A program made the translations under genes and the position numbers. A stretch of 64,000 nucleotides of DNA, from positions 165,718 through 229,717 of the IMG/VR virus record IMGVR_UViG_3300020578_000006, one strand, 5' to 3'. The notes beneath the pieces were generated by a model. The model had not been told where the DNA came from. It saw only the letters and a program-made list of their open reading frames with translations, and ran no database searches. Of the stretch, positions 2,081-51,116 are shown piece by piece (position 1 is the first letter of the stretch; each line of letters opens with the position of its first letter).

Positions 2081-2437
2081 ATGAAGTTTTTAGCTAAGCT
2101 AGCAGAAGAATATAATAAACTAGAAGTTGAAAAGCCTCAATGGGTGGAAGAATATGTTACACCCACAACACCATCTTCAACAGTTGCAACCACACCCTCT
2201 ACATCAATAACAGGTACTAAGCCAGGTAGTAATCTAGGTAAAGCCATACAAGACACTCTTGATGTTCAAATTGACCCGGAATTGGCTAAGAAAAAAGAAG
2301 AATTAGATAATGTTTATAAGCAAGTAGCGGATGCCCTTAAGAAAAAGGCAATGGACGCAACAAATAAGCTTAAACAAACATCGAGTGAATTAGCCGCTAC
2401 CCCAACGACAGCAGTGCCGTCGGTTCCAGCGGTATGA
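2081..2437 (+). CDS. Hypothetical late protein (probable internal head protein)
   Basis: TAAATA upstream; N-terminus MKFLAKLAEE; Thr/Pro-rich. Confidence 0.55.
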   Translation: MKFLAKLAEEYNKLEVEKPQWVEEYVTPTTPSSTVATTPSTSITGTKPGSNLGKAIQDTLDVQIDPELAKKKEELDNVYKQVADALKKKAMDATNKLKQTSSELAATPTTAVPSVPAV

Positions 2438-2778
2438 AATTTAATAAATTACTAGAAACAAAATATAGAGAGCTTTTCGAGCAAGTACCTCCTCAAGATT
2501 TAAACATACCTGCTCCGGAAGCTCCTGTAGCTGCACCGGCGCCGGCTGCTGCTGTTCCTCCAGCTGAACCGCCTCAGCAGAAGCCATTAACACCTGAAGG
2601 CGAAGTATTTTTAATTAATCTTATCCGTAAAGCCTTGTTTATGAACCCTGATGATCTAGGATTAAAGACAATTAAGGAGTTACCAGAAGTAAATGCAAAA
2701 AACGCGTCTGAGATTTTAGATAAGATTGTCAAGTTAATGCAAGTAGAAGCTATTGATTTGGATGTAAATACGAAATAA
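2434..2778 (+). CDS. Hypothetical late protein (probable internal head protein)
   Basis: ATGA-overlap with previous gene; MKFNKLLE..LFEQ; Pro/Ala linker. Confidence 0.55.
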   Translation: MKFNKLLETKYRELFEQVPPQDLNIPAPEAPVAAPAPAAAVPPAEPPQQKPLTPEGEVFLINLIRKALFMNPDDLGLKTIKELPEVNAKNASEILDKIVKLMQVEAIDLDVNTK

Positions 2779-2845
2779 TTAAAAAGTATTCTAATACTAT
2801 TGACGTTATTACTAATAAGGAAGTTGGTGGTCAATAAATAATATT

Positions 2846-3730
2846 ATGAATAGGGACATTAAGTTATTGTTTGAGGCTTATAATAGTATTAAAGAGGCAG
2901 AAGATACTAACATAGACACCTTTCATAAAGAATTGGCCAAACAATGGGCTAGTTTATTCTTAGATAAATTACATGAGTATCCTATTACCAGTAGATCGGC
3001 ACACTTAGAAAGATTGCTTGATGGTTCATTAGAAGTTTTTAAGAAGTATATTCTAGATGATATTAAATCTAAAAAACTATCTTATTTAAAGGCAGACGCT
3101 TTTTCAAAAAGCGAAGATGCTCAAAGCATTGTAAAAAAATTCACAGTAGTAAGTGGAGGTGTAGATAACACCAGTGATGTAGGTTTTGATTTGAGTGAAG
3201 TGGACCACGAGCAAGCCCAGAGCTTGCAAGATGTAGTAGACAGAACAATTGAAGACATGGAGAATGATGAAGATTTTGCAGATACTTTTCCTCAAGAATA
3301 CAGAGAATTTAAGAACAATATGTTTATTATGTCCACCGATAGTGGTGATTTTGTGGCTGTACTTCCAGGGCATTTAGACGAGAAGCAAGTATTTGCAAAA
3401 TTGGCATCAGCTTTCAGTGAAGATAAAAAAGGCCTATCAGATCAAGAATATCACCAAGCCCGTAAATTTGGGCTTGAAAGCGCAGGAGAAGTGGTCGGTA
3501 AAGGCCCTATAAAGATTCAGCTGACTAAAGACCAGACTTTATTATGCACAAGAGATGGACGGGAGCAAGAAGTAAAGTTCGTTAAAGGTGTTATATTTAA
3601 TTGTGATGAATGGGTAGGGGATTATTATCATTGTGAATCAAAGAAATATGGTGGTGTTGCCGTATTTCCTCCAGACATTAAGCTATTAAGCGCCCCAGAG
3701 GGCACAATTACTCATCTAACTCCAGAGTAA
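2846..3730 (+). CDS. Hypothetical late protein; contains a domain paralogous to 56580..56810
   Basis: AATAAATA-5 nt-ATG; MNRDIKLLFEAY; visible alignment to the early ORF. Confidence 0.6.
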   Translation: MNRDIKLLFEAYNSIKEAEDTNIDTFHKELAKQWASLFLDKLHEYPITSRSAHLERLLDGSLEVFKKYILDDIKSKKLSYLKADAFSKSEDAQSIVKKFTVVSGGVDNTSDVGFDLSEVDHEQAQSLQDVVDRTIEDMENDEDFADTFPQEYREFKNNMFIMSTDSGDFVAVLPGHLDEKQVFAKLASAFSEDKKGLSDQEYHQARKFGLESAGEVVGKGPIKIQLTKDQTLLCTRDGREQEVKFVKGVIFNCDEWVGDYYHCESKKYGGVAVFPPDIKLLSAPEGTITHLTPE

Positions 3731-3778
3731 ATGTAAAGGTTTACCTGTTTACTTAGTTTATTAACATATAAATAACAA

Positions 3779-4948
3779 GTGGCTTACATATCCCTAAAAG
3801 ACCTATATTTTGAAGACGTAGCCGGCATAACTGTGCCTCCGCTGCCTAGACAACAGGTAAATACACCCCCGGTCAAAGTTTTTGTGCCGGGTGATGAATA
3901 TGTACCTCAAACACCGTGGACAGAATACGATATATCTCCAGATTTATTTCAAAAAACAGCAGGTGGGGATAAGGAAGGTACTGGTAGAGGAGAATACAGT
4001 ATAGCATGTATATTGTATGGGTTCAAGACTAAGGAACAAGTGGATAAAGCATCTGGTAGAATTATACAAGGCGGGGGAGCTTCTTTTGACGTGGTAGGAC
4101 CAGATAAACGCAAGTATGAGGTAAAAGAATTAACTAAAGCTGTACGTACAGGAACGGAAGGAACCGGGGTTTTTACAGATATCCTTAATTCGACAATAGA
4201 ATTGTTAGATGCTATACTAAAGGAATTTAATACGCTAGACGCCCAGGGTAAGCAGACCATAAACAATATGATTCTAAATAGCAATACAGTAAAAAGCACT
4301 ATTCTTAACAGAAAAAGTCAAAAGGGACATTTTGACGCTATTAAAGACAGGTGGAGCTTAGATGAATATTTAAATGACATAAAGCGTAAAGCCCCAAGAG
4401 AGCTCTCTAAAGGTATTCTTATTTCTCCTATTTTAAATTTAGGTCAATATAAAGAAGAGCGCCCTTACGTAATTTTTTCCTTAAAACAATTAGTTGATGT
4501 ATTAAACGAGATTGCCTCTACACAAGTCGCAACAGGCAATGAAGAAGGTACACCTAATCCAGCTGTAAGGGATATCGCCGATACTATCAATAAACATTAC
4601 AGCGTACAAGGTGATGAGAAAGAAAAAGAATTTTTCAAAAAAGAGGCAGAGAAAATTGATAGGGCATTAATTCAAAAGAGATGTAAGGAATTTAAAAAAT
4701 GTACTGATGAATTATCTTTTAGAAAGCAAATAATAGCACTTAATTTGTCAGGAATGCTTAAGCTAATTCAAGATAAAACTCAAGATATTGTTGAGAATTT
4801 ATTTCCAAATGATGGGTTATTTGCAGTAAACAGCCAAGGCTTTCAATACATTCCGCATAGTAAGTTAAATACCTATCTTGCTTTTGATACAATAAGTTCA
4901 GGAAGTGTAAAGATCAAGCAAAAAATAGCTAGTAATGAAACCATTTAA
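3779..4948 (+). CDS. Hypothetical late protein, possible PD-(D/E)xK nuclease-like fold
   Basis: TATAAATA-4 nt-GTG; GRGE...FDV...YEVK pattern. Confidence 0.4.
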   Translation: MAYISLKDLYFEDVAGITVPPLPRQQVNTPPVKVFVPGDEYVPQTPWTEYDISPDLFQKTAGGDKEGTGRGEYSIACILYGFKTKEQVDKASGRIIQGGGASFDVVGPDKRKYEVKELTKAVRTGTEGTGVFTDILNSTIELLDAILKEFNTLDAQGKQTINNMILNSNTVKSTILNRKSQKGHFDAIKDRWSLDEYLNDIKRKAPRELSKGILISPILNLGQYKEERPYVIFSLKQLVDVLNEIASTQVATGNEEGTPNPAVRDIADTINKHYSVQGDEKEKEFFKKEAEKIDRALIQKRCKEFKKCTDELSFRKQIIALNLSGMLKLIQDKTQDIVENLFPNDGLFAVNSQGFQYIPHSKLNTYLAFDTISSGSVKIKQKIASNETI

Positions 4949-6919: not shown

Positions 6920-7498
6920 TTCGTTAATAGCATTTAATGCTTCAAGATTAAAAATTGTTTGGCGTAATACAGATTCTAGAACTTCTTTACCCTCACCGTA
7001 CAGCATATCTCTTATTTTAGATACTATTTTTAATTCATGTGAATTTTCATCTGCATCAAACTCACCGTCTTTTCTAAATTTGTTATATTCAAGATAGTTT
7101 TTAACACTCTCAATATAGCTTGCAGCTAATGTAATTTTACTGAATACCCAAGGTTCTAAATCTTGATTGTCTTTTAGTAGATTGTAAAGAGCTTTTGACC
7201 CGTTATGAATTTTATATAGTTCGTTCTTTGCCATATCAGCTTCAGATTCACCAGAACCGGTAGAGGGTTCAACAGGGGTAATTTTTGAAGAATCTTCACA
7301 ATTTTCACTATTTTTACACTGTAAACAATCTTCACCATCTTCACACCCACAAGATTTTTTATTAAGCTTTATTACTGTTGATGTGTTATTGGAAGGTACC
7401 ATATTCGTGGTTTCGGCCGCGGGGCCCAGGTTTAATTCATTAACTACAATCTGGGTATAAGCTTCGGAAATTTTTTCTAATTCACCTTTTCTGCTCAT
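6884..7498 (-). CDS. Hypothetical late protein
   Basis: AATAAATA-6 nt-ATG; DMAKNELY..LEPWVFSKITLAASY segment resembles a repeat domain common in T4-like phages. Confidence 0.6.
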   Translation of the reverse strand: MSRKGELEKISEAYTQIVVNELNLGPAAETTNMVPSNNTSTVIKLNKKSCGCEDGEDCLQCKNSENCEDSSKITPVEPSTGSGESEADMAKNELYKIHNGSKALYNLLKDNQDLEPWVFSKITLAASYIESVKNYLEYNKFRKDGEFDADENSHELKIVSKIRDMLYGEGKEVLESVLRQTIFNLEALNAINESGNKGSAPTAN

Positions 7499-7530
7499 TT
7501 TATATATTTATTCAAATAAATACATAATAT

Positions 7531-7947
7531 ATGCGTAGTTACAAAGAATTTTTCTATGAACAAATACTAGGGGCTACGGAAGGTATTACTATTCAACATG
7601 TTGGAAACGTTAGAGCCACTGTAGACACTGGTAACAGCGGTTATAATGTACTTCATGCAGAAATAATTGATGGTGCAAAAGAGGGACATGTAAAATTTAA
7701 AACAGTAAACGACAAAGTGTTAGAATTGCCTGTAAAAGAGTTTATAACGGTATCCGGAAATAATAATACCAACGATAGACCAGTAGTAGAGTTAGACTGT
7801 AGCTTGGGCCAAGAACAATTTAATAAAGTTCCTTTCAGCCTTGCGGACAGAAGTCAGCAAGATACCCCTGTTCTCTTAAGTAAAGATTTTATAAAATTAA
7901 ATGGCGGTGTTGTTAATGTTAATATTAACAGCGAAATTAAAAAATAA
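7531..7947 (+). CDS. Retropepsin-like aspartic protease (RimK-associated family) with capsid-targeting-like N-terminus
   Basis: ATVDTGNSG, R.VVEL, FSLADRS and PVLL motifs; starts MRSYKEFFYE. Confidence 0.75.
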   Translation: MRSYKEFFYEQILGATEGITIQHVGNVRATVDTGNSGYNVLHAEIIDGAKEGHVKFKTVNDKVLELPVKEFITVSGNNNTNDRPVVELDCSLGQEQFNKVPFSLADRSQQDTPVLLSKDFIKLNGGVVNVNINSEIKK

Positions 7948-8233: not shown

Positions 8234-8274
8234 CTCCCCGCGTATAATTAAATTACACTAATTATTTAGTCAAA

Positions 8275-8931
8275 TTAGATTAATTTTCGGTTTTGTGCGA
8301 ACTCAATAAACTTGTAAAATTCGTTTCTAGAATTATCTTTATCATCTAGAAAAGCACCAGACATTCTTGCGGTACGCATAGTTGAATCATGTCTAATGCC
8401 ACGGTTAGAGCAGCATGTGTGAGCGGCCTCAATCATAACAGCTACTCCTTTATTCTTAATACAAACTTCATCAATATACTTGTGAATTTGCATTGTAAGG
8501 TTTTCTTGTACTTGAGGGCGACGAGAAAACCAATCCACAATACGATTTAATTTACTCAATCCAATCACCTTACCGTCCTTTGCAGGAATATAAGCAACGT
8601 GGGCAAACCCCATAAAAGGTGCGTGGTGGTGTGAGCAGAGCGATGTAACTTTAATATTGGTTTGAGATACAATACCATCATACTTATCTACATTATCAAA
8701 CGCGGTAATCTTAGGCGGCTCACTATAACATCCCCAGGCAAAGTCTTCTACAAATGCCTTAGCAACCCTAAAGGGGGTGTTGGCACTATTTGGATCGTTT
8801 CTCCAATCATAACCCAAAGCGTCCATGTATGCTTCATACGCGGCCGCGGCCTTTAGTATAATTTGATTTCTCTCTTCCTCGGAATGTGGATGGTTATGAT
8901 TGGCAAAAGCTAGCTTTTTCTTATTAAACAT
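8275..8931 (-). CDS. folE: GTP cyclohydrolase I
   Basis: CSHH, IGLSKLNRIV, RRPQVQENLT, HTCCSNRG. Confidence 0.95.
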   Translation of the reverse strand: MFNKKKLAFANHNHPHSEEERNQIILKAAAAYEAYMDALGYDWRNDPNSANTPFRVAKAFVEDFAWGCYSEPPKITAFDNVDKYDGIVSQTNIKVTSLCSHHHAPFMGFAHVAYIPAKDGKVIGLSKLNRIVDWFSRRPQVQENLTMQIHKYIDEVCIKNKGVAVMIEAAHTCCSNRGIRHDSTMRTARMSGAFLDDKDNSRNEFYKFIEFAQNRKLI

Positions 8932-8984
8932 ATTATTATTATATCAATAATGTTAGATAATCAAGATAAATAATCAAACATTCT

Positions 8985-10589: not shown

Positions 10590-10623
10590 TTGATTTATCA
10601 CTATAAGTTAATATACTATATAG
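10590..10623 (+). promoter_or_regulatory. Sigma70-type promoter of queD, leaderless arrangement
   Basis: TTGATT-16-TATACT-6-ATG. Confidence 0.7.
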
Positions 10624-11277
10624 ATGTCATTTCAATTTGAAAGTACAAAAATTATTGATTTAGGTAGTTGTGCGTTTAGACAATGGAGAGCTGATAGTCA
10701 TTGTAAGTTTATTCATGGCTACAGGCTGCAAGCTAAATTCTGGTTTGGTTGTAACAATTTAGACGAAAAGAATTGGGTTGTAGATTTTGGAGGTTTAAAG
10801 CAATTAAAATTAACTTTAGAGAAACAGTTTGATCACACATTATGCATTGCTGGTGATGATCCTTTATTAGAAGATTTTAAAAACCTACATAACAAAGGTG
10901 CTGTTGATTTAAGAATTATGCCAACAGGTGTAGGTATAGAGCGTACAGCACAATGGTGTTTTATAAATGCTGACATTATTATAAGATCCCAGACAAATAA
11001 TAGATGTTGGGTTGAAAGAGTAGAGGTATGGGAGCATGATAAAAATTCTGCTATTGTAACGCGAGACTATGTTACAGTACCACAACATGATCCTTATGTT
11101 TCAGAGAAACATAATGCAGAACAATTTGAACTACCTTTTCAACCACAGGCTACCACGGTTGCTGCTCCTGCTCCAGAGATACAAAACGCAGTTACAAGGA
11201 GTAATGCAGCTGCGGTCGGTAATGAAATGTCTACCGGTTGGGGCAATCCATTTGGTGGTACTAGCTGGGGTTCTTAA
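10624..11277 (+). CDS. queD: 6-carboxytetrahydropterin synthase (QueD/PTPS) with C-terminal extension
   Basis: CAFRQWRADSHCKFIHGY, VVDFG, FDHT, GIE motifs. Confidence 0.9.
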   Translation: MSFQFESTKIIDLGSCAFRQWRADSHCKFIHGYRLQAKFWFGCNNLDEKNWVVDFGGLKQLKLTLEKQFDHTLCIAGDDPLLEDFKNLHNKGAVDLRIMPTGVGIERTAQWCFINADIIIRSQTNNRCWVERVEVWEHDKNSAIVTRDYVTVPQHDPYVSEKHNAEQFELPFQPQATTVAAPAPEIQNAVTRSNAAAVGNEMSTGWGNPFGGTSWGS

Positions 11278-11998
11278 TAGTCTTAACTATAGAAACTATA
11301 AACTTTAGTAGCTTGCTCCTGGTAATATCGTCTTCGGTAAAGTGAAACGTTTCAATACCATGTTCCTTGCTGTTTTCACAACTGAAAGCTTTCATAAAAC
11401 TCTGAAAGCCAGATTTAGGAATATCAGATTGCAAGGAATCACCAATAACAAATAACTTACAACCCTTACCAAATCTAGTTAGAATTGTTGTTAATTCATT
11501 ATGCTCTAGATTTTGTGCCTCATCAACAATTACCACATTGTTGGAAAACGTTGCTCCTCGTAAAAAATTAACAGGTATACATTTTAAATATTCATTCTCA
11601 AAGAGTATATTAGCTATTTGCTTACCCACAAGCTCATCACATTTTTCTACTAATGGTATGCTCCATGGCTTAAACTTATCGTCTACCTCCCCCGGTAAAC
11701 TACCTAGTTTTCTAGAAGCTGATTCAACAATACTCCGTATATACACAATTTCATCTGCCTTTCGCTCTTTAAGTAATGTTAAGGCAACATACACAGCAAG
11801 ATATGTTTTTGAGCTTCCTGCTGGTCCATCTGCAAAAATGATGTTTGTTTTATCATCAAAAGCCTTCTCTGCAAAAGCTTTGTGATGTTCATTTAAATGA
11901 AACTTTTGATCAATTTTAAAATTTAGAAGAATATCAGACTTAATGAGTTTTTCTTCAAATTTAGCAGCCTTTCTGGCTGCTCTAGCCATCTTAGACAT
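11261..11998 (-). CDS. phoH: PhoH-family ATPase
   Basis: GPAGSSKT, FLRGATF, VDEAQN, LTRFG, GDSLQSD. Confidence 0.95.
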   Translation of the reverse strand: MSKMARAARKAAKFEEKLIKSDILLNFKIDQKFHLNEHHKAFAEKAFDDKTNIIFADGPAGSSKTYLAVYVALTLLKERKADEIVYIRSIVESASRKLGSLPGEVDDKFKPWSIPLVEKCDELVGKQIANILFENEYLKCIPVNFLRGATFSNNVVIVDEAQNLEHNELTTILTRFGKGCKLFVIGDSLQSDIPKSGFQSFMKAFSCENSKEHGIETFHFTEDDITRSKLLKFIVSIVKTIKNPS

Positions 11999-12023
11999 CT
12001 GTATTATTTATTCAAAATCTACA

Positions 12024-12057
12024 TTGATTAATGCAAAGTTAACCTTATAATAATACT
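12024..12057 (+). promoter_or_regulatory. Sigma70-type promoter of queE, leaderless arrangement
   Basis: TTGATT-16-TATAAT-6-ATG. Confidence 0.7.
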
Positions 12058-12804
12058 ATGTCTTTAGATACAACAATATTTTTAAGTGATGATAAGGTTT
12101 TTTATACAATAGAAGGGGAAGGCGAATATGTAGGTCACCCATCGGTGTTTATGAGATTATCGATGTGTAATTTAACGTGTAAAGGGTTTGCTTCTGCTGA
12201 TTCACCTCACGGGTGCGATAGCTTTATAAGTTGGTCAGTAAAAAATCATTTTAAAATTAAAGACATTTTAGATTTACTGGATAATGAGGGGTATACAAAG
12301 CATTTACGTGAAGGGGCCATCTGGAAGATTACAGGGGGTGAGCCTCTAATTCAACAGAAAAACCTATTAGAACTGGTTAGAGAGTTTGCTAAGCGTAATG
12401 GGTTTATACCAAAAATAGATTTTGAGACTAATGCAACTATTCAACCTTTAGATGACTGGACAGCATACCGGGTAACATATACAACCTCTCCAAAGCTATC
12501 TAATAACGGTGACCCAGAAGAAAAGCGCTATAAACCTGCCGTACTTAAATGGCACGTTAGTGCCGGTTCCGGATTCAAATTTGTAATTAACGAGCAAAAA
12601 GACTTAGACGAAGTATATGAGAAGTATATCAACCACCCAGATATATTGTTGCCAAGACATAGAGTATGGTTAATGCCGTGTTGTGGTAGTAGGCAAGAGC
12701 ATACAGAAAAAGCTTCTATGGTAGCAGAATTATGTAAAACACATGATATGAAATTTAGTCCAAGGTTGCAGCTAGTAATTTGGGATAAAGCATTAAAAGT
12801 ATAG
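12058..12804 (+). CDS. queE: 7-carboxy-7-deazaguanine synthase (radical SAM)
   Basis: FYTIEGEG, Cx3Cx11C cluster motif, ITGGEPL, ETNAT, SPKL, SPRLQ. Confidence 0.9.
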   Translation: MSLDTTIFLSDDKVFYTIEGEGEYVGHPSVFMRLSMCNLTCKGFASADSPHGCDSFISWSVKNHFKIKDILDLLDNEGYTKHLREGAIWKITGGEPLIQQKNLLELVREFAKRNGFIPKIDFETNATIQPLDDWTAYRVTYTTSPKLSNNGDPEEKRYKPAVLKWHVSAGSGFKFVINEQKDLDEVYEKYINHPDILLPRHRVWLMPCCGSRQEHTEKASMVAELCKTHDMKFSPRLQLVIWDKALKV

Positions 12805-13921: not shown

Positions 13922-13946
13922 TTACAATTATATTATAAAATAAGAT

Positions 13947-14642: not shown

Positions 14643-14653
14643 TAAATATCTTA

Positions 14654-14884
14654 ATGTTATTTGATAAAAATTACAATTTTATAATGGAAAGTTTTAAGTC
14701 AATTAAAACCATTCATAGACTGTTTTATCCAAGAAACTTTAATCTATCTGAAGAATTTATAAATTCTTTTCGAAAAGAATATGCAAGGTTAAAGTCAATG
14801 AATATTGATGATAGAAGAATTTTACAGAAAATGATTAAGGCGCTACCCTTTCATAAGGATAACGTAAATATTAATACTCTATAA
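14654..14884 (+). CDS. Hypothetical late protein
   Basis: AATAAATA-5-ATG. Confidence 0.5.
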   Translation: MLFDKNYNFIMESFKSIKTIHRLFYPRNFNLSEEFINSFRKEYARLKSMNIDDRRILQKMIKALPFHKDNVNINTL

Positions 14885-15698
14885 TAACAACCCCGGCTGC
14901 TCCACTACCACCAGCACCGCTTGCAGAACCTCCACCACCGCCGGCTCCCGTATTATCTGAACCGTTTTGACCGCTCACGTTACTACCATTACCACCGCGA
15001 CCGGCTCCTGAGCCCATAAACCCTGGTCCGCCTCGTCCGCCTGCAGCAAACGCCGCAGTACTCCCCGCAATACCATTTTCACCAGAAGAGCCTGCTAAAG
15101 GTATATCACCACCAGACCCTGCTAATCCCCCTGCCCCACCGGCGACCGCACCTCCAGCAGACCCAACAGTGCCACCAGAACCTCCCGGTGCTATAACCTG
15201 TGTTTCTCCTGTAACCGTAAAGGTGGACTGACCGCCTGCTGCAGCTGCAGCACCACCGGCGCCAACCACATAAGAATATGTTTTACCTCTTACATTTGTA
15301 AAATATTTTATGTTTGTACTGCCCCCGCCACCACCACCTCCAGCTCCTGAGCTGCTGGAGCCGCCTCCACCTCCCCCGCCACCTACTATAGTCACCTTAA
15401 TATTGTTAACACCGGCGGGAAATGTTACACCGGATGCTGACCCCCCACCAGTAGGTGCGTATCTAATAACAGTGGTAAACCCTGGTTGGCGAGACTCTAC
15501 CGTAGCACTCAAGGTATTAACCCGACTACTAATAGTGGCTACAGATGTATAAAAACTAGTATTGTTTGGCCCTATTACAAAATCTTTAAAATCTATAATG
15601 TTTGTGCCTGTACTATTTTCAACAATAAGATAATTGCCGTTGACAATTTCCTCTATTTGGTTTAACTCTTTAATATTAACCTTGTTAAACGTCGACAT
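14871..15698 (-). CDS. Glycine-rich virion fibre-like protein
   Basis: N-terminal I.EL...LIV..GT..I anchor-like segment; TFPAGV..VTIVGGGGGGG...GAAGVVIIEY domain; late promoter. Confidence 0.7.
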   Translation of the reverse strand: MSTFNKVNIKELNQIEEIVNGNYLIVENSTGTNIIDFKDFVIGPNNTSFYTSVATISSRVNTLSATVESRQPGFTTVIRYAPTGGGSASGVTFPAGVNNIKVTIVGGGGGGGGSSSSGAGGGGGGGSTNIKYFTNVRGKTYSYVVGAGGAAAAAGGQSTFTVTGETQVIAPGGSGGTVGSAGGAVAGGAGGLAGSGGDIPLAGSSGENGIAGSTAAFAAGGRGGPGFMGSGAGRGGNGSNVSGQNGSDNTGAGGGGGSASGAGGSGAAGVVIIEY

Positions 15699-15758
15699 AT
15701 CAGTTATTTATTACTTTAGATATAGTTGCAATACAATTATTTTTAATATAATAAACGT

Positions 15759-18310: not shown

Positions 18311-18367
18311 ACTTTATTTTAATGTATATATCATTGAAATCCATTGATTATGATATAAAATTAATAA

Positions 18368-32072: not shown

Positions 32073-32086
32073 GAATTATTTATTCC

Positions 32087-32487: not shown

Positions 32488-32518
32488 AGTTATCAAAGAA
32501 CGATTTATTATAATCTAT

Positions 32519-32837: not shown

Positions 32838-33053
32838 TTAAGCAACCTGAAGACCGCTCCTACGAATGGCGCGGGTCAGATCACGAGCATCAACGCGACG
32901 AATGCGCGTAGTATACTGATTCTTCGGCTCAAGAACACGAGCGCGCTTAACGGTAAATTGACCGCCACGGGAACGCTCGATCTTAACGTAAAACGTCTTC
33001 GGCCGAAGATCCTTATTTGTATAATCGATTGACATATTCATTCCTCCTTTCAT
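32838..33053 (-). CDS. Small Arg-rich protein
   Basis: TTGATT-16-TATTAT-6-ATG; internal AGGAGG before a third ATG; CGT/CGC-rich codons. Confidence 0.6.
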   Translation of the reverse strand: MKGGMNMSIDYTNKDLRPKTFYVKIERSRGGQFTVKRARVLEPKNQYTTRIRRVDARDLTRAIRRSGLQVA

Positions 33054-33093
33054 ACATTGATAATAACATATGTGTAGAATAAATCAACATACT

Positions 33094-37299: not shown

Positions 37300-37333
37300 T
37301 AGTAAAATATAGAGGAAATTCTAAAACAATCAA

Positions 37334-41200: not shown

Positions 41201-41356
41201 GGGAGGAAGCCATAGAGAATCATAACCTACTTCTGCAAGTTCAGGAAGCTTGGCAGTAATTTCTGCCCAACTAGTATTAAAATACTGAAGCATAGCCTCA
41301 GCTTGAACGTTAACTGAAATGAAAAGAGAAGCGAAAAATGCAATTGCCCTTTTCAT
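38198..41356 (-). CDS. Secreted multidomain GH13 alpha-amylase-family enzyme
   Basis: Signal peptide; LWLPP, GYDLFD, DNIMNH, GLRLDAVKH (nucleophile), FGEH (acid/base), SHDN. Confidence 0.9.
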   Translation of the reverse strand: MKRAIAFFASLFISVNVQAEAMLQYFNTSWAEITAKLPELAEVGYDSLWLPPPAKAGSSFSVGYDLFDPFDLGSKDQRGSTYTRYGTEAELMMLIETAHRFGIRVYFDNIMNHRGFDTPGYTADTPLDLYPGMRPEDFHLKLMPDGTYRKWYNTSDWGNVWEVQNRGLSDLIDIATETGIWNKNHGPNEGWWTQKVKFLRHPNNPEFYCYDANGNYVGFGYENGLTVEYLAANEAYYSEYVEEYLNRAVRWFMDRTKCDGLRLDAVKHVPYDFFGASYGTDKDFSDYGYVGQAQRQFNISRGFADINHRDSVFNTDLGRDDAMMFGEHLGEPPPYGDYINAGMRLVDNILKSNLDNRIGNNLSGFDGQGSGGFGSDVAVMHSQSHDNGWSTDRHIQHAFYFTRAGLPLIYTDGNYHAGVLTNSGGEFPRIANSAFLGQWSDPRIPNLVKIHNNFARGSQKGIWSNNDYVAYERIDRRYGASSDATGVTMIAMINGNRWNGKSAPITSSFPSDAYLFQYATGPNGSGQVGFYKYANELRNVIVPPSSYYMFSYRTPERPTLNTGLNAINIRENGTNVPYIKVKRKDGTNGDAAFNPYGLYDTNTSDYTYETFIPIVRSGQNLSFIVQLDGSAENVLLKLDGGVDVNSQMGLGSMTDIKRDYPPGTDDMFLGYEQMKFDYRVRDKFAAANVNRNIVGSQGAETYIAIKGLRRVNFNLGNGPNAFFTPSDYIYHDPNVIADGRRQFVANASSATIRIKTGEYYNNAKLFVYYTTDGISFPEGYGGVAAIASTRVLEAIRDGTGPNDGNGRPTYWWSVQIPWPTGQLRYKIGGTYLDTLSVFPSNGNMVSIKSKMASQFSVTNFNATTVENYVHNDFASKRVGLEEGYHVLRARAFLKAPGFTPYYNTFTQVFYYDSKPPSGQILYPRPGETLTSQNYEFVIKTDSTVKEVFYNIRDANALNDDAATGEDNGNGVLVNPDGSKGNLAWAQVPKVDVNSRYEKEWRFMYKNIPAFGTAAIKIIMVEDSMESDVASLNAAAVKNTATINFSCATRGPQ

Positions 41357-41364
41357 ATTAATAT

Positions 41365-41925
41365 TTATTTGGCAAACAATTTCTTATCTTTATATGGACA
41401 AAAACTATATACATCATCAAAAGGTGTCTTGTTAGGATCGTCCTGCTTTTGATTTTTACCTAAGCTTACTACTATGAAATCTTTAGGTACATTTTCTTGA
41501 AAGTTTTTACCATAATATTCTACTTTACCAGAACCGTCTATATCCCATTTTAATGCATATTGATTCTTCCACGGGTCAAGTAAGGTACCATCTTCTTTTA
41601 TACCTTCACCATAATAAGGTCTTAAGATTTTACATACATCTTTACTATCATCTATTCTAGTAGGAGGACCATACCATGCGTAATATTCATGGTCAAAAGG
41701 ATACCCCTTTCTAGGCGCAGGCCATGCAATCAAGCCATTTTCAGATTTATAAAGCTGTACAGCATGATACAACCCTCTCATTTCTACATTCTGTACTTTA
41801 GATATTTTTGTTTTTTCTTGTATATGCTGGTAAGCAGGAAATGACAAGCTAACTAGTAAAAGAATGATGCTGACGGCTACAAGCATCTCTATAATAGTAA
41901 ATGCTGTAGCCGTCAGCTTCTTCAT
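41365..41925 (-). CDS. Type IV pilin/pseudopilin-like protein
   Basis: AFTIIEMLVAVSIILLLVSLSFPAY N-methylation segment; LDPWKNQY and S.GKN. Confidence 0.85.
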   Translation of the reverse strand: MKKLTATAFTIIEMLVAVSIILLLVSLSFPAYQHIQEKTKISKVQNVEMRGLYHAVQLYKSENGLIAWPAPRKGYPFDHEYYAWYGPPTRIDDSKDVCKILRPYYGEGIKEDGTLLDPWKNQYALKWDIDGSGKVEYYGKNFQENVPKDFIVVSLGKNQKQDDPNKTPFDDVYSFCPYKDKKLFAK

Positions 41926-44793: not shown

Positions 44794-44882
44794 ATTAAGT
44801 TAGACAGATCAACTTTAAAAACATTAAATTTATTTTTGTGACAAAAAAAATTATTAGGGTTTCTTATTGACTAAATATTATT

Positions 44883-45044
44883 ATGGCAGAGCTTGATGAG
44901 CTCATCGCCTTTACCATAGAAAAATACGTGGCAAAAGGCGGCAAAAAAAAGAGCGTTTTGAAGAAAATAGCAGAGTGTAAGACTATGAAAGGGCTTTTAA
45001 AGCTAAGAAGTAAGTTGGGTATGATTAAGTGGGAGAATAAATAA
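44883..45044 (+). CDS. Small basic late protein (53 aa, not in ORF track)
   Basis: TAAATA-5-ATG; MAELDELIAF...KWENK. Confidence 0.45.
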   Translation: MAELDELIAFTIEKYVAKGGKKKSVLKKIAECKTMKGLLKLRSKLGMIKWENK

Positions 45045-45048
45045 CTAT

Positions 45049-45270
45049 ATGAAGCTATTCGACAAAATACTTGATGTGTATTATGATGTTGTCTTTAAAG
45101 TAGAAGACCTTGCAACAACTGTTAAGTATAAAGTTGTTGATTTGATCGACGGTATTAAGGGCCACAAAAGTAGTCTTGATGCCTATGTAGGTCAAGAAAT
45201 TGATCTAGTTCAGAAAGAACCGGTCAAAAAGACAAAGAAAAAGAAAACGTCTAAAAAGAAAAAGAAGTAA
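45049..45270 (+). CDS. Small late protein with Lys-rich tail
   Basis: AATAAATA-5-ATG. Confidence 0.5.
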   Translation: MKLFDKILDVYYDVVFKVEDLATTVKYKVVDLIDGIKGHKSSLDAYVGQEIDLVQKEPVKKTKKKKTSKKKKK

Positions 45271-46042: not shown

Positions 46043-46088
46043 AAAGAAGATACGTTGATTTTTGTATAAACATAGTTAAATTACGTAT

Positions 46089-46277
46089 ATGGCAACACAA
46101 ACACACGAATCAATTAAAAATTTAGTCGAAACTCTTTCTACAGAAGAAACAAAATTCTGGGAAGGTAATAATGCAGCTGGTACTCGCGCCCGTAAAGCGT
46201 TGCAGGAAATTATTAAGGCTGCACGCGAAGGCCGTAAGGCAATTCAAGAAGAAAAAAATTCCCGTAAGGGTAAATAA
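46089..46277 (+). CDS. Histone H1-like Hc1-family protein
   Basis: KF..GNNAAGTRARKALQE motif. Confidence 0.75.
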   Translation: MATQTHESIKNLVETLSTEETKFWEGNNAAGTRARKALQEIIKAAREGRKAIQEEKNSRKGK

Positions 46278-46646
46278 TTAGCCATTCAGATTCCAAAGAC
46301 GGCGGGTCTCTGGGCTGGAATAATCTCTTCCATGTACTGTTAATGTACGTGAAGCTGTTGCACTCGAAGCCGTAAACGTACTAACTGTATTATCCTCTAG
46401 TACAACGGCAAATGTTGTGCCATGGTAAACATTATCGATGTTAACTCTAGTCCCGTTTACAGCCAAAATGTTTGTTGTATATGCAGCTTGTAAGCCTGTC
46501 CCTGCAACCGGGTCATTAAAAAGTATGCCCTTAGAGCCGGCAGTTAGATTTGTAATACCTACACCTTGTGCTGTAAGAGAATAAGCTAAATTAGAAGGTG
46601 TTGTTAAACCGGGATCTGTAACGTAGTATTTAAACTCGAGTGCCAT
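46278..46646 (-). CDS. Hypothetical late (structural-like) protein
   Basis: TATAAATA-6-ATG; Thr/Ala-rich beta composition. Confidence 0.5.
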   Translation of the reverse strand: MALEFKYYVTDPGLTTPSNLAYSLTAQGVGITNLTAGSKGILFNDPVAGTGLQAAYTTNILAVNGTRVNIDNVYHGTTFAVVLEDNTVSTFTASSATASRTLTVHGRDYSSPETRRLWNLNG

Positions 46647-46676
46647 ATAATATATTTATATGGCTCAGGCAACAAA

Positions 46677-47810
46677 TTATTTAAATCCGATAATTTTTTT
46701 AGGCTGGTCTTTTTCGGCTAAGTCTTCCTTATCATAATTGTAAATCTCTGTAAGAGTTAAAGGTTTATCTACTTTTTTGTCGACACCTAAGAATTTAAAT
46801 ACTTTAGTAGCCTCTTCTTCTGTTAACTCTTTAAACTCGTGTTCGGCAATTAATCTTCCCTTACGTAGTAGTGCTGAGTCAAGCTTTTCTCTTGATGTGT
46901 TTAAGGTAGCAATTATTTGTATATTCAAACAATCTCCTAATACTCCATCGGTCATATTAAGAATATTTGATACCCCATTGTTTGTGTCGTTTGATTCTCT
47001 CGACCCAATCACCTTTTCTGCGTCTTCAATAACCAATATTGAGTTTTTATTTTCCATTAAAAATGGTAAAAAGTTGGGCGCAGTAATACCTTCTGTCATA
47101 TTTGGAGGAACAAAAATGACTTTCTTCTTTAAGAGGGTTGTTAGATATTTAATATAAGTTGTTTTACCGGTGCCTGGCTTTCCGTTTAAAATAACCAACC
47201 CAGTATCACCGAGTGTATTAAGTCTTTTAACTATTGTTTTGTGTTTTTTAATAAATCCCTCACCATAATTTAACTCAAGATCCATTTCTTTACATGGAAG
47301 CTTTGTTGTAAACTCTTTTAATGTGTAGCCTTCCCCCGGGGTCCCAATAATCAAATATATATTATTTGTTGCTATTTCTTCGTGAACAGTAAAATATTTT
47401 AACAAAGAGTCTAGTTTTTCTTTTTTATCAACTAAGGCAATTAGGGTGAGAGAGTGAGCATTAATGTCTTTGGTTGTGGCACTATCATAATCATACTCCA
47501 AATCAATTTCGTTTCCAGCAAGTGTGTCCAGTTTTGCTCTTTCTAGTAAGACTAATACTCCATCACCTTCAAAAGCATATGACGTAGAAACAGTCTCTAC
47601 CTTCTTACCTTTTTTGTAGGGTACAACTACTTCGTAGGCTAGAGTAAAATCTTTTTTAAGTTTTTCTATACAGTCCTCCTTGTATAGTAATCTTACCGGT
47701 CGATATACAAAAGGCTGGCTATTAAATTTATGACAAAAATAATAGCCTAAATTAAAAAGGTTATAGGTGCCTGATGTTTGACTATAAGGCTGAAACATGG
47801 TATCACCCAT
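46677..47810 (-). CDS. AAA+ ATPase
   Basis: GKPGTGKTT, LVIEDAE, LNMTDG, ATLN, ALLRKGRL. Confidence 0.9.
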   Translation of the reverse strand: MGDTMFQPYSQTSGTYNLFNLGYYFCHKFNSQPFVYRPVRLLYKEDCIEKLKKDFTLAYEVVVPYKKGKKVETVSTSYAFEGDGVLVLLERAKLDTLAGNEIDLEYDYDSATTKDINAHSLTLIALVDKKEKLDSLLKYFTVHEEIATNNIYLIIGTPGEGYTLKEFTTKLPCKEMDLELNYGEGFIKKHKTIVKRLNTLGDTGLVILNGKPGTGKTTYIKYLTTLLKKKVIFVPPNMTEGITAPNFLPFLMENKNSILVIEDAEKVIGSRESNDTNNGVSNILNMTDGVLGDCLNIQIIATLNTSREKLDSALLRKGRLIAEHEFKELTEEEATKVFKFLGVDKKVDKPLTLTEIYNYDKEDLAEKDQPKKIIGFK

Positions 47811-47838
47811 ATCTTATTATAGCCAAATATATTATTAA

Positions 47839-48003
47839 TCAACCTCTTTTTGAACCAAAATCAGAACGCCTGGCCCTGTAAGCCGGTTTTTGTCGAGTAC
47901 CTTTGGGTATAATAGGTTTAATCGTTCTATCGCGAAATTGCTTCGCAAGAGCTTTGTTTGACGAGTTACTGTTGTTTCTGTTATAACCAATTATTTTTGC
48001 CAT
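47839..48003 (-). CDS. Small basic protein (54 aa, not in ORF track)
   Basis: MAKIIGYNRNNS...RARRSDFGSKRG, open ATG to TGA. Confidence 0.5.
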   Translation of the reverse strand: MAKIIGYNRNNSNSSNKALAKQFRDRTIKPIIPKGTRQKPAYRARRSDFGSKRG

Positions 48004-48031
48004 ACATTTATTATGAAGGAAAATATTTTAT

Positions 48032-48772: not shown

Positions 48773-48954
48773 CAGTGATAGTTTAAATAGCGTTGTGCGG
48801 CTTTTGCAGTATGACTACCCTTATTCTTTTGTCTGGATTTGATTCCTCTGGCCTTAGAACATGTAAGCTTGCCTTTGGTTTGACGCTTTAATATACCAGG
48901 TCTAACGGGATCGTGTATACTCTTTTCCAAGATAAACTCTTTAAATGATTTCAC
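48769..48954 (-). CDS. Small basic protein with capsid-targeting-like N-terminus
   Basis: TATAAATA-5-GTG; MKSFKEFILE. Confidence 0.65.
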   Translation of the reverse strand: MKSFKEFILEKSIHDPVRPGILKRQTKGKLTCSKARGIKSRQKNKGSHTAKAAQRYLNYHC

Positions 48955-49164
48955 ATAAATATTTATATGTTGAGCAGTAAACCAGGCATAATAGCTTATT
49001 ATATTATAATAACTACATTGGCTGGTTTAATATATCTGACTACAAAGAGTTGGTTGTGATTGATTATATAATTGGGTTTACGCTGGGAATGATCATAAAT
49101 GGCATTATTATACTATTGTGTATTAAGATGTTCAGAGATATAGATAAACATTCATAAATACATT

Positions 49165-49380
49165 GTGGCCAAGAAAAAGAAAAAATTAAAGAAAGTAAAT
49201 AGACTCACAATTAAAGAATGTGAGGCAATACTTTCTCGGTTAGATAGAGATAAAGAATCTCAGTATTATAACCATGTTTTAAACCATTATAGAGGGTTAT
49301 TGCCAGATATGAGAAGTGCAGTTGCATTAGGCAAAATAAGTGTTGAGCAAGGCAAAACAGCTCCACACATAACTAAATAA
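49165..49380 (+). CDS. Small late protein
   Basis: TAAATA-4-GTG. Confidence 0.5.
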   Translation: MAKKKKKLKKVNRLTIKECEAILSRLDRDKESQYYNHVLNHYRGLLPDMRSAVALGKISVEQGKTAPHITK

Positions 49381-49384
49381 TATA

Positions 49385-49765
49385 GTGAACAACGATTCTC
49401 GTCTATTATCAGAGGCCTATAAGACAATAGTTGAGCAAAACCCTCAATTGGGTCAGTTTAGACAGGATGTACCGACTTATAATATACAACAAATGTCACA
49501 GGCTTTTGGTTTAAATCCGGATCAAGAAAAAGCTGTTAAAAATTTGTTACAAGCTTTTAATATTAATCCTGACAACCCTCAGGCTAGTCAGCGTGCTATT
49601 ATTGGAATGATAATAAATGGTTTAGCTAGACTCGCACAAACCGCTGTAAATCAGCCTGTGCAGCAAGCCCAGCCACAACAGACTTCTGCACAAATAGCCC
49701 CGGTGGGTGGTCAACCACAAAGCGCCCCAGTTAGCGCAGGGTTTAGGACCATCACCCCGGAATAA
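49385..49765 (+). CDS. Late protein, MNxDxxL family, Gln-rich
   Basis: TAAATA-5-GTG; MNNDSRLLSEAY. Confidence 0.6.
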   Translation: MNNDSRLLSEAYKTIVEQNPQLGQFRQDVPTYNIQQMSQAFGLNPDQEKAVKNLLQAFNINPDNPQASQRAIIGMIINGLARLAQTAVNQPVQQAQPQQTSAQIAPVGGQPQSAPVSAGFRTITPE

Positions 49766-49965
49766 TAGATCTTAATAACCAGCAGCTAATAAACCCCGTT
49801 ATATAACCAATTATAACAAGAGCAGTTCCTACTGCACAATCATTCATAAACCACTTGGTTAACCAGTATAACCGTGACTTCATTTAGTATATAGTCGGGC
49901 CCCCATACCCTTTAAACCGAAGGTTTCGGTTCCGTAAAAAAATTTTTAATTATATAAATAATACA

Positions 49966-50724
49966 GTGAATGCGGATAGTCATTTGATATTTGAAGCCTT
50001 TAAGAACAGGGTTGTTAAGAAGAATGATGATGAAGAGGGTGATCTAATGACCCATATGAAAGAAAAGGGTATGATACCAAAGGATGCACGTGTAACTCTA
50101 CCAGCACACAAGACTGAGGAAGAAGAAAAAGATTCATTTGATATGCACGTTGATCAATTAAAGAATACTTCCACAGAAGAATTAATTGAAGATTTGAAGG
50201 ATTTGTACCGCATTGTTGCTGATGAAAAAAATGTGGGTGATTATTCTTATGATAGTGCAAATTTGGATATTGAAATAATTCATGATATCTTGAAAAGCAG
50301 AGGAATGGATTATCAAAAAGACTTGGCTCCTATTTGGAATAAGATTGATAGTGAAGTGAATGGAAGTGAAGAAAATGCAGAACAAAGACTTGACCCCAAG
50401 TGTTGGAAAGGCTATCATAAACAAGGCACCAAAATGAAAGGTGGTGTAAGAGTAAACAATTGTGTTAAGAGTGAGAATGCAGAAGACATGTCCAAAAGTC
50501 CTTTTCATTATGATCCCAGTCATGGTTTAATGCAGGCGGCCAATCAAATCAATGATATATTGAAGAGCTCCTATAATGATGAAGCTACGCCTGAACACAT
50601 TGAAAAAATGGCATTAAGAATAGTGGGGCCTCAGTCTGAATATGGAGATTATCATGAATTTAATTTAGCATTGCGCGGGGTAAAGGCGTTGTTGTATAGG
50701 TATGTTGCAGTACAGATGAATTAA
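49966..50724 (+). CDS. Late protein, MNxDxxL family
   Basis: TATAAATA-5-GTG; MNADSHLIFEAF; CWKGY...GG..VNNCVK motif. Confidence 0.65.
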   Translation: MNADSHLIFEAFKNRVVKKNDDEEGDLMTHMKEKGMIPKDARVTLPAHKTEEEEKDSFDMHVDQLKNTSTEELIEDLKDLYRIVADEKNVGDYSYDSANLDIEIIHDILKSRGMDYQKDLAPIWNKIDSEVNGSEENAEQRLDPKCWKGYHKQGTKMKGGVRVNNCVKSENAEDMSKSPFHYDPSHGLMQAANQINDILKSSYNDEATPEHIEKMALRIVGPQSEYGDYHEFNLALRGVKALLYRYVAVQMN

Positions 50725-50732
50725 ATAACAGT

Positions 50733-51116
50733 ATGAATAGAGACAGTCATCTTATTATGGAGGCCTATTTAACTGTAAGAGAACAAGCAACCACACCTCC
50801 AACTACAACAGTTCAAACACCGGCTGCGGCCCCTCAAAGCACAAATTTACAGGCCGAAACATTGTTGCAAAAGATTACCGAATTAGCTAGAATTCCTTAT
50901 AAAAATAGCATGAAGCTTGTTCAGATATTAAATGGTATGAGAAATCAGCCGGCTCAACCGGGGGCTTCCACCACACCAGTTCGAGTAACTAATAATGTAG
51001 AATTGGATAAAGCAATTGACGATATAATGAAAGTGCTCGGTATTAATTATGGCAATAAAGAGGCTGTGTATAGTGCCATAAGGTCGTTGGTTGATACCTA
51101 CGTTACTACCCCTTAA
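50733..51116 (+). CDS. Late protein, MNxDxxL family
   Basis: TAAATA-5-ATG; MNRDSHLIMEAY. Confidence 0.6.
   Translation: MNRDSHLIMEAYLTVREQATTPPTTTVQTPAAAPQSTNLQAETLLQKITELARIPYKNSMKLVQILNGMRNQPAQPGASTTPVRVTNNVELDKAIDDIMKVLGINYGNKEAVYSAIRSLVDTYVTTP

Follow-up and report, generated by a model that had tools for sequence, protein, structure and literature searches.

In this uncultured T4-like phage of about 230 kb, the late (gp55-type TAAATA) and the early (sigma-70-type) promoters both sit where transcription should begin on the first base of the start codon, so that about a third of its genes are probably made from leaderless mRNAs. This layout is conserved across a large uncultured clade and differs from that of T4 and of cyanophages. 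The window analysed here is a stretch of 64 kb that forms the end (positions 165718-229717) of the 229.7-kb genome, hereafter G000. In the absence of mapped transcription start sites, the term leaderless remains an inference from geometry, which we nevertheless consider likely.

The starting point was a sequence-only reading of the window, which had noted TAAATA 4-7 nt before ATG or GTG at 15 positions, without room for a Shine-Dalgarno (SD) sequence, and had inferred that late mRNAs are leaderless or nearly so. All 15 sites were confirmed on the strand of the gene. Considering d as the number of bases between the last A of TAAATA and the first base of the start codon, these sites have d=4 (3779, 32072), d=5 (2846, 14654, 45049, 49385, 49966, 50733, 41356, 48954), d=6 (7498, 11998, 15698, 46646) or d=7 (2081). 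Five more sites were found in the window, at 1094 (d=6), 7531 (d=8), 44883 (d=5), 49165 (d=4) and, doubtfully, at 55609 (TTG start), which brings the total to 20 in the window; the whole genome holds 66. The late-class sites of the window are the following:

1082..1096 (+), TAAATA, d=6, ATG of gene 1094-1510 (weak T4/Syn9 homologue)
2068..2083 (+), TAAATA, d=7, ATG of 2081-2437; the TAA of the motif is the stop codon of the upstream ORF 1537-2070
2835..2848 (+), TAAATA, d=5, ATG of 2846-3730
3769..3781 (+), TATAAATA, d=4, GTG of 3779-4948
7496..7510 (-), TAAATA, d=6, ATG of 6884-7498; half of a back-to-back divergent pair in a 32-bp spacer
7517..7533 (+), TAAATA, d=8, ATG of 7531-7947; the other half of this divergent pair
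11996..12010 (-), TAAATA, d=6, ATG of 11261-11998; diverges from the sigma-70-class promoter of 12058
14643..14656 (+), TAAATA, d=5, ATG of 14654-14884
15696..15710 (-), TAAATA, d=6, ATG of 14871-15698
32070..32082 (-), TAAATA, d=4, GTG of the 2179-aa gene 25533-32072; directly after the 3' end of the tmRNA gene
41354..41367 (-), TAAATA, d=5, ATG of the 1052-aa gene 38198-41356
44872..44885 (+), TAAATA, d=5, ATG of the 53-aa ORF 44883-45044
45038..45051 (+), TAAATA, d=5, ATG of 45049-45270
46644..46658 (-), TATAAATA, d=6, ATG of 46278-46646
48952..48965 (-), TATAAATA, d=5, GTG of 48769-48954
49155..49167 (+), TAAATA, d=4, GTG of 49165-49380
49374..49387 (+), CTAAATA, d=5, GTG of 49385-49765
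49955..49968 (+), TATAAATA, d=5, GTG of 49966-50724
50722..50735 (+), TAAATA, d=5, ATG of 50733-51116

This arrangement is much stronger than chance. The window contains fewer TAAATA than dinucleotide shuffles give (87 versus 128 +/- 11), yet 20 of these 87 sit at starts. In the whole genome, 63 of the 312 called genes have the motif at d=4-6 (22, 25 and 16 genes at d=4, 5 and 6, respectively), against 2.96 +/- 1.73 (maximum 10) in 2000 shuffles of the 30-nt upstream regions, whereas each other distance holds only 0-2 genes. Indeed, TAAATA is the top hexamer at that position although it is the rarest of the 15 A4T2 hexamers genome-wide. The logo of the 66 sites shows an invariant TAAATA preceded by A/C and A/T, without information upstream of position -3, and thus without a -35 element. 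However, GTG starts are oddly concentrated at d=4 (10 of 22).

We found that the geometry is not late-specific, a point missed by the sequence-only reading. In a second promoter class, of the form TTGAnn-N16-TATAAT, the -10 hexamer ends exactly 6 nt before the start codon in 30-34 genes, against about 0.6 per other distance. The sigma-70-class sites of the window, some of them with a variant spacer or hexamer, are the following:

1503..1539 (+), TTGACT-N16-TATAAT-N6-ATG of 1537-2070
8929..8964 (-), TTGATT-N15-TATAAT-N6-ATG of 8275-8931 (GTP cyclohydrolase)
10590..10626 (+), TTGATT-N16-TATACT-N6-ATG of 10624-11277 (QueD-like)
12024..12060 (+), TTGATT-N16-TATAAT-N6-ATG of 12058-12804 (QueE-like)
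15726..15761 (+), TTGCAA-N15-TATAAT-N6-ATG of 15759-16568
18334..18370 (+), TTGAAA-N16-TAAAAT-N6-GTG of 18368-19099
33051..33087 (-), TTGATT-N16-TATTAT-N6-ATG of 32838-33053
37297..37333 (-), TTGATT-N16-TATATT-N6-ATG of 36385-37299 (endonuclease, phrog_8420)
46055..46091 (+), TTGATT-N16-TAAATT-N6-ATG of 46089-46277
47808..47842 (-), TTGATT-N15-TATAAT-N5-ATG of 46677-47810 (ATPase-like)
55031..55067 (-), TTGAAG-N16-TATAAT-N6-ATG of the small early ORF 54725-55033
55371..55407 (-), TTGACC-N16-TATAAT-N6-ATG of 55053-55373
55832..55868 (-), TTGAAC-N16-TATAAT-N6-ATG of 55646-55834
56808..56845 (-), TTGACT-N17-TACAAT-N6-ATG of 56580-56810
57497..57533 (-), TTGACT-N16-TATAAT-N6-ATG of 57251-57499
57779..57815 (-), TTGTCT-N16-TATAAT-N6-ATG of 57530-57781
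59586..59622 (-), TTGACT-N16-TATAAT-N6-ATG of 59265-59588
60015..60052 (-), TTGTTA-N17-TAGAAT-N6-ATG of 59748-60017
62654..62690 (-), TTGACT-N16-TATAAT-N6-ATG of 62282-62656
63030..63066 (-), TTGACC-N16-CATAAT-N6-ATG of 62673-63032

The two classes correspond to a functional split. The TAAATA class covers late functions, namely tail fibres, tail tube, terminase, prohead protease, a gp15-like protein, a peptidase and bS21 (homologues of gp17, gp21, gp19 and gp15 are among the carriers), whereas the sigma-70 class covers DNA polymerase, primase, gp32, FolE/QueD/QueE and small ORFs. Consistent with a gp55-type late system, a gp55 homologue is encoded 1 kb upstream of the window (G000 164060-164677, minus strand; phrog_234 E=5.5e-26, phrog_12791 E=3.8e-10). 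It matches T4 gp55 by BLASTP with E=9e-11 and 39% identity over 80 aa, and is 30-37% identical to cyanophage gp55. However, only about half of the T4 gp55 residues that contact the -10-like element are conserved (L54, Y97 and T99 are kept; R57, F86 and H95 are not). A gp45 sliding clamp (G000 147761-148318, minus strand; phrog_223 E=5.6e-13) and a gp44 clamp loader homologue (125511-126476) are also present, and no RNA polymerase beta subunit was found. A profile search with phrog_254, which matches Syn9 gp33, found nothing in G000 at E<=10, although gp33 is only about 80 aa long and diverges fast. With this reservation, the computational tests suggested by the sequence-only reading came out in its favour.

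The distances observed for the two classes, 5 nt (mode) and 6 nt, match the known registers of the two -10 elements. A sigma-70 hexamer occupies -12 to -7, and the structure of T4 gp55, in which flipped adenines are reported at -12, -9 and -8, places TATAAATA at -13 to -6. Both geometries therefore put +1 on the A or G of the start codon. Indeed, this first base is a purine in 108 of 110 promoter-adjacent genes (TTG in 2 of 110), and position -1 is T in 67% of late sites. Moreover, 23 of the 66 late sites face a divergent neighbour, and eleven divergent pairs have both genes in this geometry, with spacers as short as 32 bp. The other 43 late sites lie in short same-strand gaps, so that read-through transcripts would also carry these genes with the motif internal, and translation from those transcripts would need another mechanism.

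SD pairing is depleted at promoter-adjacent starts (6-9% at or below -4.5 kcal) and enriched at coupled operon-internal starts (37%), against 13% in controls. The phage therefore uses two initiation modes rather than lacking SD sequences altogether. However, predicted folding of the first 40 nt does not differ between gene classes. The most abundant virion proteins, the major capsid protein and the tail sheath, are exceptions, their genes keeping conserved SD-bearing leaders, and the portal gene has its motif at d=11.

The layout is conserved in about 150 related contigs. In 76 sheath-neighbourhood loci, d=4/5/6/7 holds 49/161/95/20 genes and the sigma-70 class has 46 genes at d=6, and in 77 capsid-neighbourhood loci, d=5/6/7 holds 67/32/14 genes. 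Protein alignments of orthologues begin at residue 1, and the spacer sequence drifts while the motif and the start codon stay put, ATG and GTG interchanging at the same position.

We therefore propose that this deep-branching phage transcribes with the host RNA polymerase from two promoter classes that are both fused to the start codon. Early and DNA-metabolism genes would use the canonical sigma-70 promoter, and late genes a promoter with core TAAATA, usually [A/C]TAAATA, read by the gp55 homologue, presumably with the phage gp45 clamp. The promoter-proximal gene of each short operon would thus be made from a leaderless or 1-2-nt-leader mRNA, presumably initiated by 70S ribosomes on a 5'-terminal AUG or GUG. 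In E. coli-type hosts, leaderless AUG is weak and GUG nearly inactive, and the host of this phage is unknown. Downstream genes would be translated by stop/start overlap coupling or by occasional SD sequences.

Other explanations appear much less likely. The promoters could be real but the start codons misassigned, or the transcription start could lie elsewhere, so that ordinary leaders would lie inside the called ORFs. Our gene calls take the first start after a stop, which could over-extend ORFs, and one quarter of the late-class starts are GTG. However, orthologues at 48-94% identity align from residue 1, codons 2-4 show synonymous third-position changes and are therefore coding, and ATG and GTG interchange in place. 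In addition, d=4 and d=5 sites are out of frame with the TAA of the motif, so the geometry is not created by the ORF definition, and SD pairing is depleted at these starts. We consider this possibility unlikely.

It is somewhat more doubtful still that TAAATA is an A/U-rich, SD-independent ribosome-binding or translation-enhancer element on ordinary leadered or polycistronic transcripts. The motif does sit where a ribosome-binding site would be, SD sequences are rare in this genome, and two thirds of the sites lie in short same-strand gaps where polycistronic RNA is plausible. However, only 21% of genes carry the motif, all in the late class, and none of the 106 coupled internal genes was classed with it. 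The motif equals the gp55 recognition element and a gp55 gene is present, and in T4, Syn9, KVP40 and P-SSM4 the same motif sits 13-39 nt upstream, followed by SD sequences, so that it acts there as a promoter. A complete -35/-10 sigma-70 promoter occupies the same place in front of other genes and cannot be a ribosome-binding site, and TAAATA is avoided elsewhere on both strands. Nor does the genome resemble Bacteroidota-type genomes with non-SD motifs, since TAnnTTTG is not enriched upstream of starts and early promoters are TTGACA/TATAAT.

An RNA processing site, at which an endonuclease would trim polycistronic late RNA, is very unlikely. Several genes elsewhere in the genome start 6-8 nt after a tRNA 3' end, which makes processed 5' ends next to start codons plausible in this phage, but no such nuclease was identified, divergent back-to-back pairs in 32-50-bp spacers have no upstream transcript to process, and neither the sigma-70 class nor the presence of gp55 would be explained. 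Finally, a by-product of the A+T-rich composition (35% G+C) is refuted by the shuffles, by the rarity of TAAATA and by the conservation of the geometry across about 150 diverged loci.

Among known systems, T4 late promoters (TATAAATA read by gp55 with gp33 and the gp45 sliding clamp) share the core element, the absence of a -35 element, an A/T-rich segment downstream and the control of virion and lysis genes. In T4, however, the element ends 13-34 nt before start codons, with none at 4-7, and is followed by SD-bearing leaders, and the consensus here is [A/C]TAAATA rather than TATAAATA. The T4-like cyanophages and pelagimyophages have the same [A/C]TAAATA core, and HTVC008M, Mosig, Melnitz and P-SSM4 have 10, 6, 3 and 2 genes, respectively, with the motif at exactly d=5. 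The leadered arrangement nevertheless dominates in those phages (near/far counts: Syn9 1/23, P-SSM4 3/30, Melnitz 3/28, Mosig 7/23), the Pelagibacter phage HTVC008M being intermediate (14/11), and their sigma-70-type promoters are not at d=6. The corresponding counts are 1/30 in T4 and 0/25 in KVP40, against 66/14 in G000 with a further 31 sigma-70 sites at d=6. Leaderless late promoters are not mentioned in the papers that we searched on the cyanophages and pelagimyophages.

Leaderless phage transcripts are already known in Thermus phages phiYS40 and P23-45. phiYS40 is a large myovirus that uses host RNA polymerase and whose middle and late mRNAs mostly lack leaders, which a review links to raised IF2 and lowered IF3. 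It is, however, unrelated, has no gp55/gp45 system and infects a host phylum where leaderless mRNA is the norm, and in G000 the early class appears to be leaderless as well. In Deinococcus, TANNNT 6-7 bp before the ORF has been validated as a promoter for leaderless mRNA, and in mycobacteria ATG or GTG, but not TTG, at the mRNA 5' end is necessary and sufficient, which matches the start codons observed here. Those are cellular genomes using the housekeeping sigma factor, whereas here a phage sigma factor (gp55) with a different -10 register shows the matching geometry, shifted by 1 nt.

More speculatively, and with low confidence, an abundant, uncultured T4-like clade may have given up SD-led initiation for almost every promoter-proximal gene in both temporal classes. 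Infection would then depend on leaderless (5'-RTG, 70S-type) translation from the first minute, which implies a host whose ribosomes handle such mRNAs well. The late-expressed ribosomal protein bS21 of the phage (G000 39317-39520, itself behind a d=4 TAAATA) and its tmRNA would then retune ribosomes towards these mRNAs, which would give viral bS21 a concrete function and link gp55/gp45 late transcription directly to leaderless translation.

The genome examined, named G000 hereafter, is a 229,717-bp IMG/VR virus record (35% G+C, rated complete by CheckV) of which the window represents the last 64 kb (165718-229717). It corresponds to a deep-branching T4-like myovirus that encodes homologues of the T4 and Syn9 portal, major capsid protein, prohead protease, terminase, tail sheath and tube, gp15, gp6, DNA polymerase, primase, helicase, UvsX, UvsW, gp46/47, gp44, gp32 and NrdAB. 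A gp55 late sigma factor is encoded just upstream of the window and a gp45 clamp is also present, whereas no RNA polymerase beta subunit was found and gp33 was not detected by profile search. No cultured phage is close: a megablast of 6 kb against phages gave no hit, and tblastn with the sheath gave less than 40% identity, over the C-terminal half only. However, IMG/VR holds at least 599 related contigs for both the sheath and the capsid gene.

In what follows, d is the number of bases between the last A of TAAATA and the first base of the start codon. The 15 sites proposed by the sequence-only reading, in which TAAATA precedes ATG or GTG by 4-7 nt, are all as described, and the window holds five more. 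Using a simple ORF caller (312 genes, 95% coding), we found 66 genes with TAAATA ending 3-8 nt before the first start codon, with 22, 25 and 16 genes at d=4, 5 and 6 and only 0-2 genes at every other distance up to 74. Shuffling of the 30-nt upstream regions gave 2.96 +/- 1.73 genes at d=4-6, against 63 observed. TAAATA is the most frequent hexamer at that position, yet it is the rarest of the fifteen A4T2 hexamers in the genome and is depleted in the window relative to dinucleotide shuffles (87 vs 128 +/- 11), a pattern expected if the bare hexamer is enough to act as a promoter and is selected against elsewhere. The pattern is not created by the ORF definition since, at d=4 and d=5, the TAA of the motif is out of frame with the gene. 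Among the late-class sites, GTG starts are concentrated at the shortest spacing (10 of 22 at d=4, 6 of 25 at d=5 and 0 of 16 at d=6), which is unexplained but may reflect a preference for starting with GTP when the spacer is only 4 nt.

A second promoter class was not seen by the sequence-only reading. Genes with an upstream gap but without TAAATA turned out to carry complete sigma-70 promoters, composed of A/T-rich tracts followed by TTGAnn, a 16-bp spacer and TATAAT. The -10 hexamer ends exactly 6 nt before the ATG in 30-34 genes, against about 0.6 genes per other distance. These genes encode the T4-type DNA polymerase, primase, gp32, GTP cyclohydrolase, QueD, QueE, an endonuclease and the blocks of small ORFs located at both genome ends, one of which is window 52-64 kb on the minus strand. 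Three of them, each behind its own sigma-70-type promoter at d=6, suggest a 7-deazaguanine DNA-modification pathway:
Window 8275-8931, minus strand: GTP cyclohydrolase I.
Window 10624-11277, plus strand: QueD-like gene.
Window 12058-12804, plus strand: QueE-like gene.
A further radical-SAM gene lies at G000 56201-57355 behind a late motif. The TAAATA class comprises tail fibres, tail tube, terminase, prohead protease, a gp15-like protein, a peptidase and large virion-type proteins. The two motifs therefore split the genome into an early/DNA-metabolism programme and a late programme, as in T4. A suspected paralogue family among genes starting M-N-x-D was not supported by BLASTP.

The geometry of both classes points to leaderless mRNA. 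A sigma-70 hexamer spans -12 to -7, so that six spacer bases put +1 on the A of ATG. In the T4 gp55 structure, the flipped adenines of TATAAATA are placed at -12, -9 and -8, so that the element spans -13 to -6 and five spacer bases do the same. The observed modes are 6 for the sigma-70 class and 5 for the gp55 class, in G000 and, more clearly, in its relatives, and this 1-nt offset is hard to explain if the motifs were ribosome-binding elements. The first base of the start codon is a purine in 108 of 110 promoter-adjacent genes and position -1 is T in two thirds of late sites, which would correspond to the usual pyrimidine(-1)/purine(+1) start-site preference. The use of ATG and GTG but not TTG is the rule found experimentally for leaderless initiation in mycobacteria, and a -10 element 6-7 bp before the ORF has been validated as the promoter of leaderless genes in Deinococcus. 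Predicted 5'-end RNA folding (first 40 nt), however, does not distinguish promoter-adjacent genes from other genes.

The start codons themselves were examined in 76 loci around sheath orthologues (51-94% identity), in which orthologues of the tail tube, the second tube-like gene, the gene upstream of the sheath and the terminase align from residue 1. The motif and the start codon stay in place while the 4-7-nt spacer and the flanks drift, third codon positions vary from codon 2 onward, and ATG and GTG replace each other at the same site. Pooled histograms give d=4/5/6/7 = 49/161/95/20, with 46 genes of the sigma-70 class at d=6, and, around capsid orthologues, d=5/6/7 = 67/32/14, with 22 genes of the sigma-70 class at d=6. 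In many orthologues of the tail-tube gene (G000 134937-135482), for example in the related loci L036, L046 and L067, GGAG lies two bases upstream of the TAAATA, about 13 nt before the ATG. This may be a long-spaced SD sequence used on read-through transcripts from the sheath promoter, which would give the gene two routes to translation.

Considering the organisation of the genome around these promoters, twenty-three late sites face a gene on the opposite strand. Eleven divergent pairs have both partners in this geometry, with spacers of 32-59 bp in most, including window 7498/7531, where the two TAAATA elements lie 6 bp apart on opposite strands. In eight cases the TAA of the motif is the stop codon of the upstream gene. 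A further 106 genes follow their upstream neighbour within 15 nt, 47 of them with 4-nt or 1-nt stop/start overlaps. Pairing to the anti-SD is enriched at these coupled genes (37% at or below -4.5 kcal, against 13% at random ATGs) and depleted at promoter-adjacent starts (6-9%). The phage thus appears to use leaderless initiation for the first gene of each short operon, and coupling or SD sequences for the rest. Processing of tRNAs could also yield near-leaderless mRNAs, since, among the eight tRNAs of the genome (none of them in the window), two are followed by a gene starting 6-8 nt after their 3' end:
G000 13611-14327, minus strand: gene next to tRNA-Met (14333-14406).
G000 21383-21661, plus strand: gene next to tRNA-Arg (21300-21375).

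There are exceptions to this layout. The major capsid gene (G000 97692-99167) has a leader of roughly 65 nt that is conserved across the clade:
G000 99168-99250, minus strand (19168-19250 in the stretch L025; relatives L111-L190): conserved structured 5' leader of the major capsid gene.
This leader begins with a degenerate AAATA-type element and contains a hairpin (GAGGn-loop-nCCTGA) whose fifth pair appears, by eye, to covary, a second variable hairpin, an invariant GGTCGA and an AAGGAG 8-10 nt before the ATG. It has no Rfam match, and RNAalifold applied to a MAFFT alignment gave only a 4-bp invariant stem. The sheath gene has TAAATA 45 nt upstream, a distance that recurs in relatives, and a GGAGG, while the portal gene has the motif at d=11. 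The proteins needed in the largest copy numbers therefore keep SD-led leaders, which, we infer, fits leaderless initiation being adequate but not maximal.

The same pipeline was applied to other T4-like phages.

Number of TAAATA motifs near (d=3-8) and far (d=9-45) from start codons in T4-like phages (near / far).
T4: 1 / 30
KVP40 (145 kb sampled): 0 / 25
Syn9: 1 / 23
P-SSM4: 3 / 30
Melnitz: 3 / 28
Mosig: 7 / 23
HTVC008M: 14 / 11
G000: 66 / 14

The near sites of the pelagimyophages are almost all at exactly d=5, and only G000 and its clade have the sigma-70 class at d=6. In the cultured SAR11 phage HTVC008M (Pelagibacter; stretches L192-L199), ten genes have ATAAATAG ending exactly 5 nt before the ATG (starts at 6280, 7562, 16007(-), 18916(-), 18943, 19456, 31132, 49760, 75830 and 142360), beside about eleven genes with SD-bearing leaders of 18-31 nt. 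Promoter-to-start fusion therefore exists as a minority arrangement in cultured pelagiphages, which does not appear to be described in the papers that could be searched, and has become the rule in the clade of G000. The nearest described precedent for a phage running its later genes on leaderless mRNA is Thermus phage phiYS40.

Attempts to identify the host failed. The only hit for the sheath protein among GTDB species genomes (52% identity) is L110 (DLPY01000007.1), a 2637-bp, wholly phage-derived contig binned in a Flavobacteriaceae MAG (UBA7446), which is a weak and possibly misleading hint. WhiB is absent. A Bacteroidota host was rejected as the working assumption because the early promoters are canonical (TTGACA/TATAAT, with A/T-rich upstream tracts), TAnnTTTG is not enriched and SD sequences are enriched at internal genes. 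As early genes are also in leaderless geometry, we infer that the host ribosome must translate 5'-RTG mRNAs before any phage protein is made, and GTG starts conserved in whole subclades point to a host more like mycobacteria than E. coli in this respect. The phage encodes a bS21 homologue and a tmRNA:
G000 39317-39520, minus strand, outside the window (19317-19520 in the stretch L022): bS21 homologue of 67 aa (Pfam PF01165, 28.2 bits, just above the 27-bit cut-off), with a C-terminus rich in aromatic residues, preceded by TAAATA at d=4 and located between the gp15-like gene and the portal region.
Window 32084-32487, minus strand: one-piece tmRNA gene (Rfam RF00023, 87 bits, E=4e-34), missed by ARAGORN.
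Read from the aligned resume codon, the tag frame of the tmRNA gives an unusually long (33-residue), acidic tag that does not end in the usual ...LAA. A TAAATA at 32516-32521(-) lies about 28 nt upstream of the mature 5' end, and the late promoter of the 2179-aa gene directly follows the 3' end of the tmRNA. A role for bS21 in favouring leaderless mRNAs is attractive but unsupported. Indeed, bS21 is present in G000, HTVC008M, Mosig and Melnitz and absent in P-SSM4 and KVP40, but Melnitz (3 near/28 far) is no different from P-SSM4 (3/30), so the correlation is weak. The published study of bS21-encoding phages (PMC9723584) describes larger (293-331 kb) phages and says nothing on promoters or leaders.

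Taken together, these results confirm the observation of TAAATA elements abutting start codons. The interpretation of the sequence-only reading, that late mRNAs are leaderless or nearly so, is supported by every sequence-level test available although, without a mapped 5' end, it remains an inference from geometry, and it has to be broadened to both temporal classes and qualified for the capsid, sheath and portal exceptions and for the two modes of translation. T4 late transcription is a textbook system whose promoters have always been described together with SD-bearing leaders. Here, the same gp55-type element, as well as the host-type early promoter, are fused to the start codon at the distance predicted by the geometry of each sigma factor, across a clade with at least 599 contigs in IMG/VR. 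If confirmed at the transcript level, this would be a natural case of a phage that runs about a third of its genes, including its DNA polymerase and most tail genes, on leaderless mRNAs. Such a case would constrain the identity of the host, whose ribosomes must translate 5'-AUG and 5'-GUG mRNAs, and would give a simple rule for correcting gene starts and predicting temporal class in such metagenomic phages. It would also provide a graded series (T4/KVP40/Syn9, then P-SSM4/Melnitz, Mosig, HTVC008M, then G000) for studying how leaders are lost and offer a testable context for the unexplained phage-encoded bS21.
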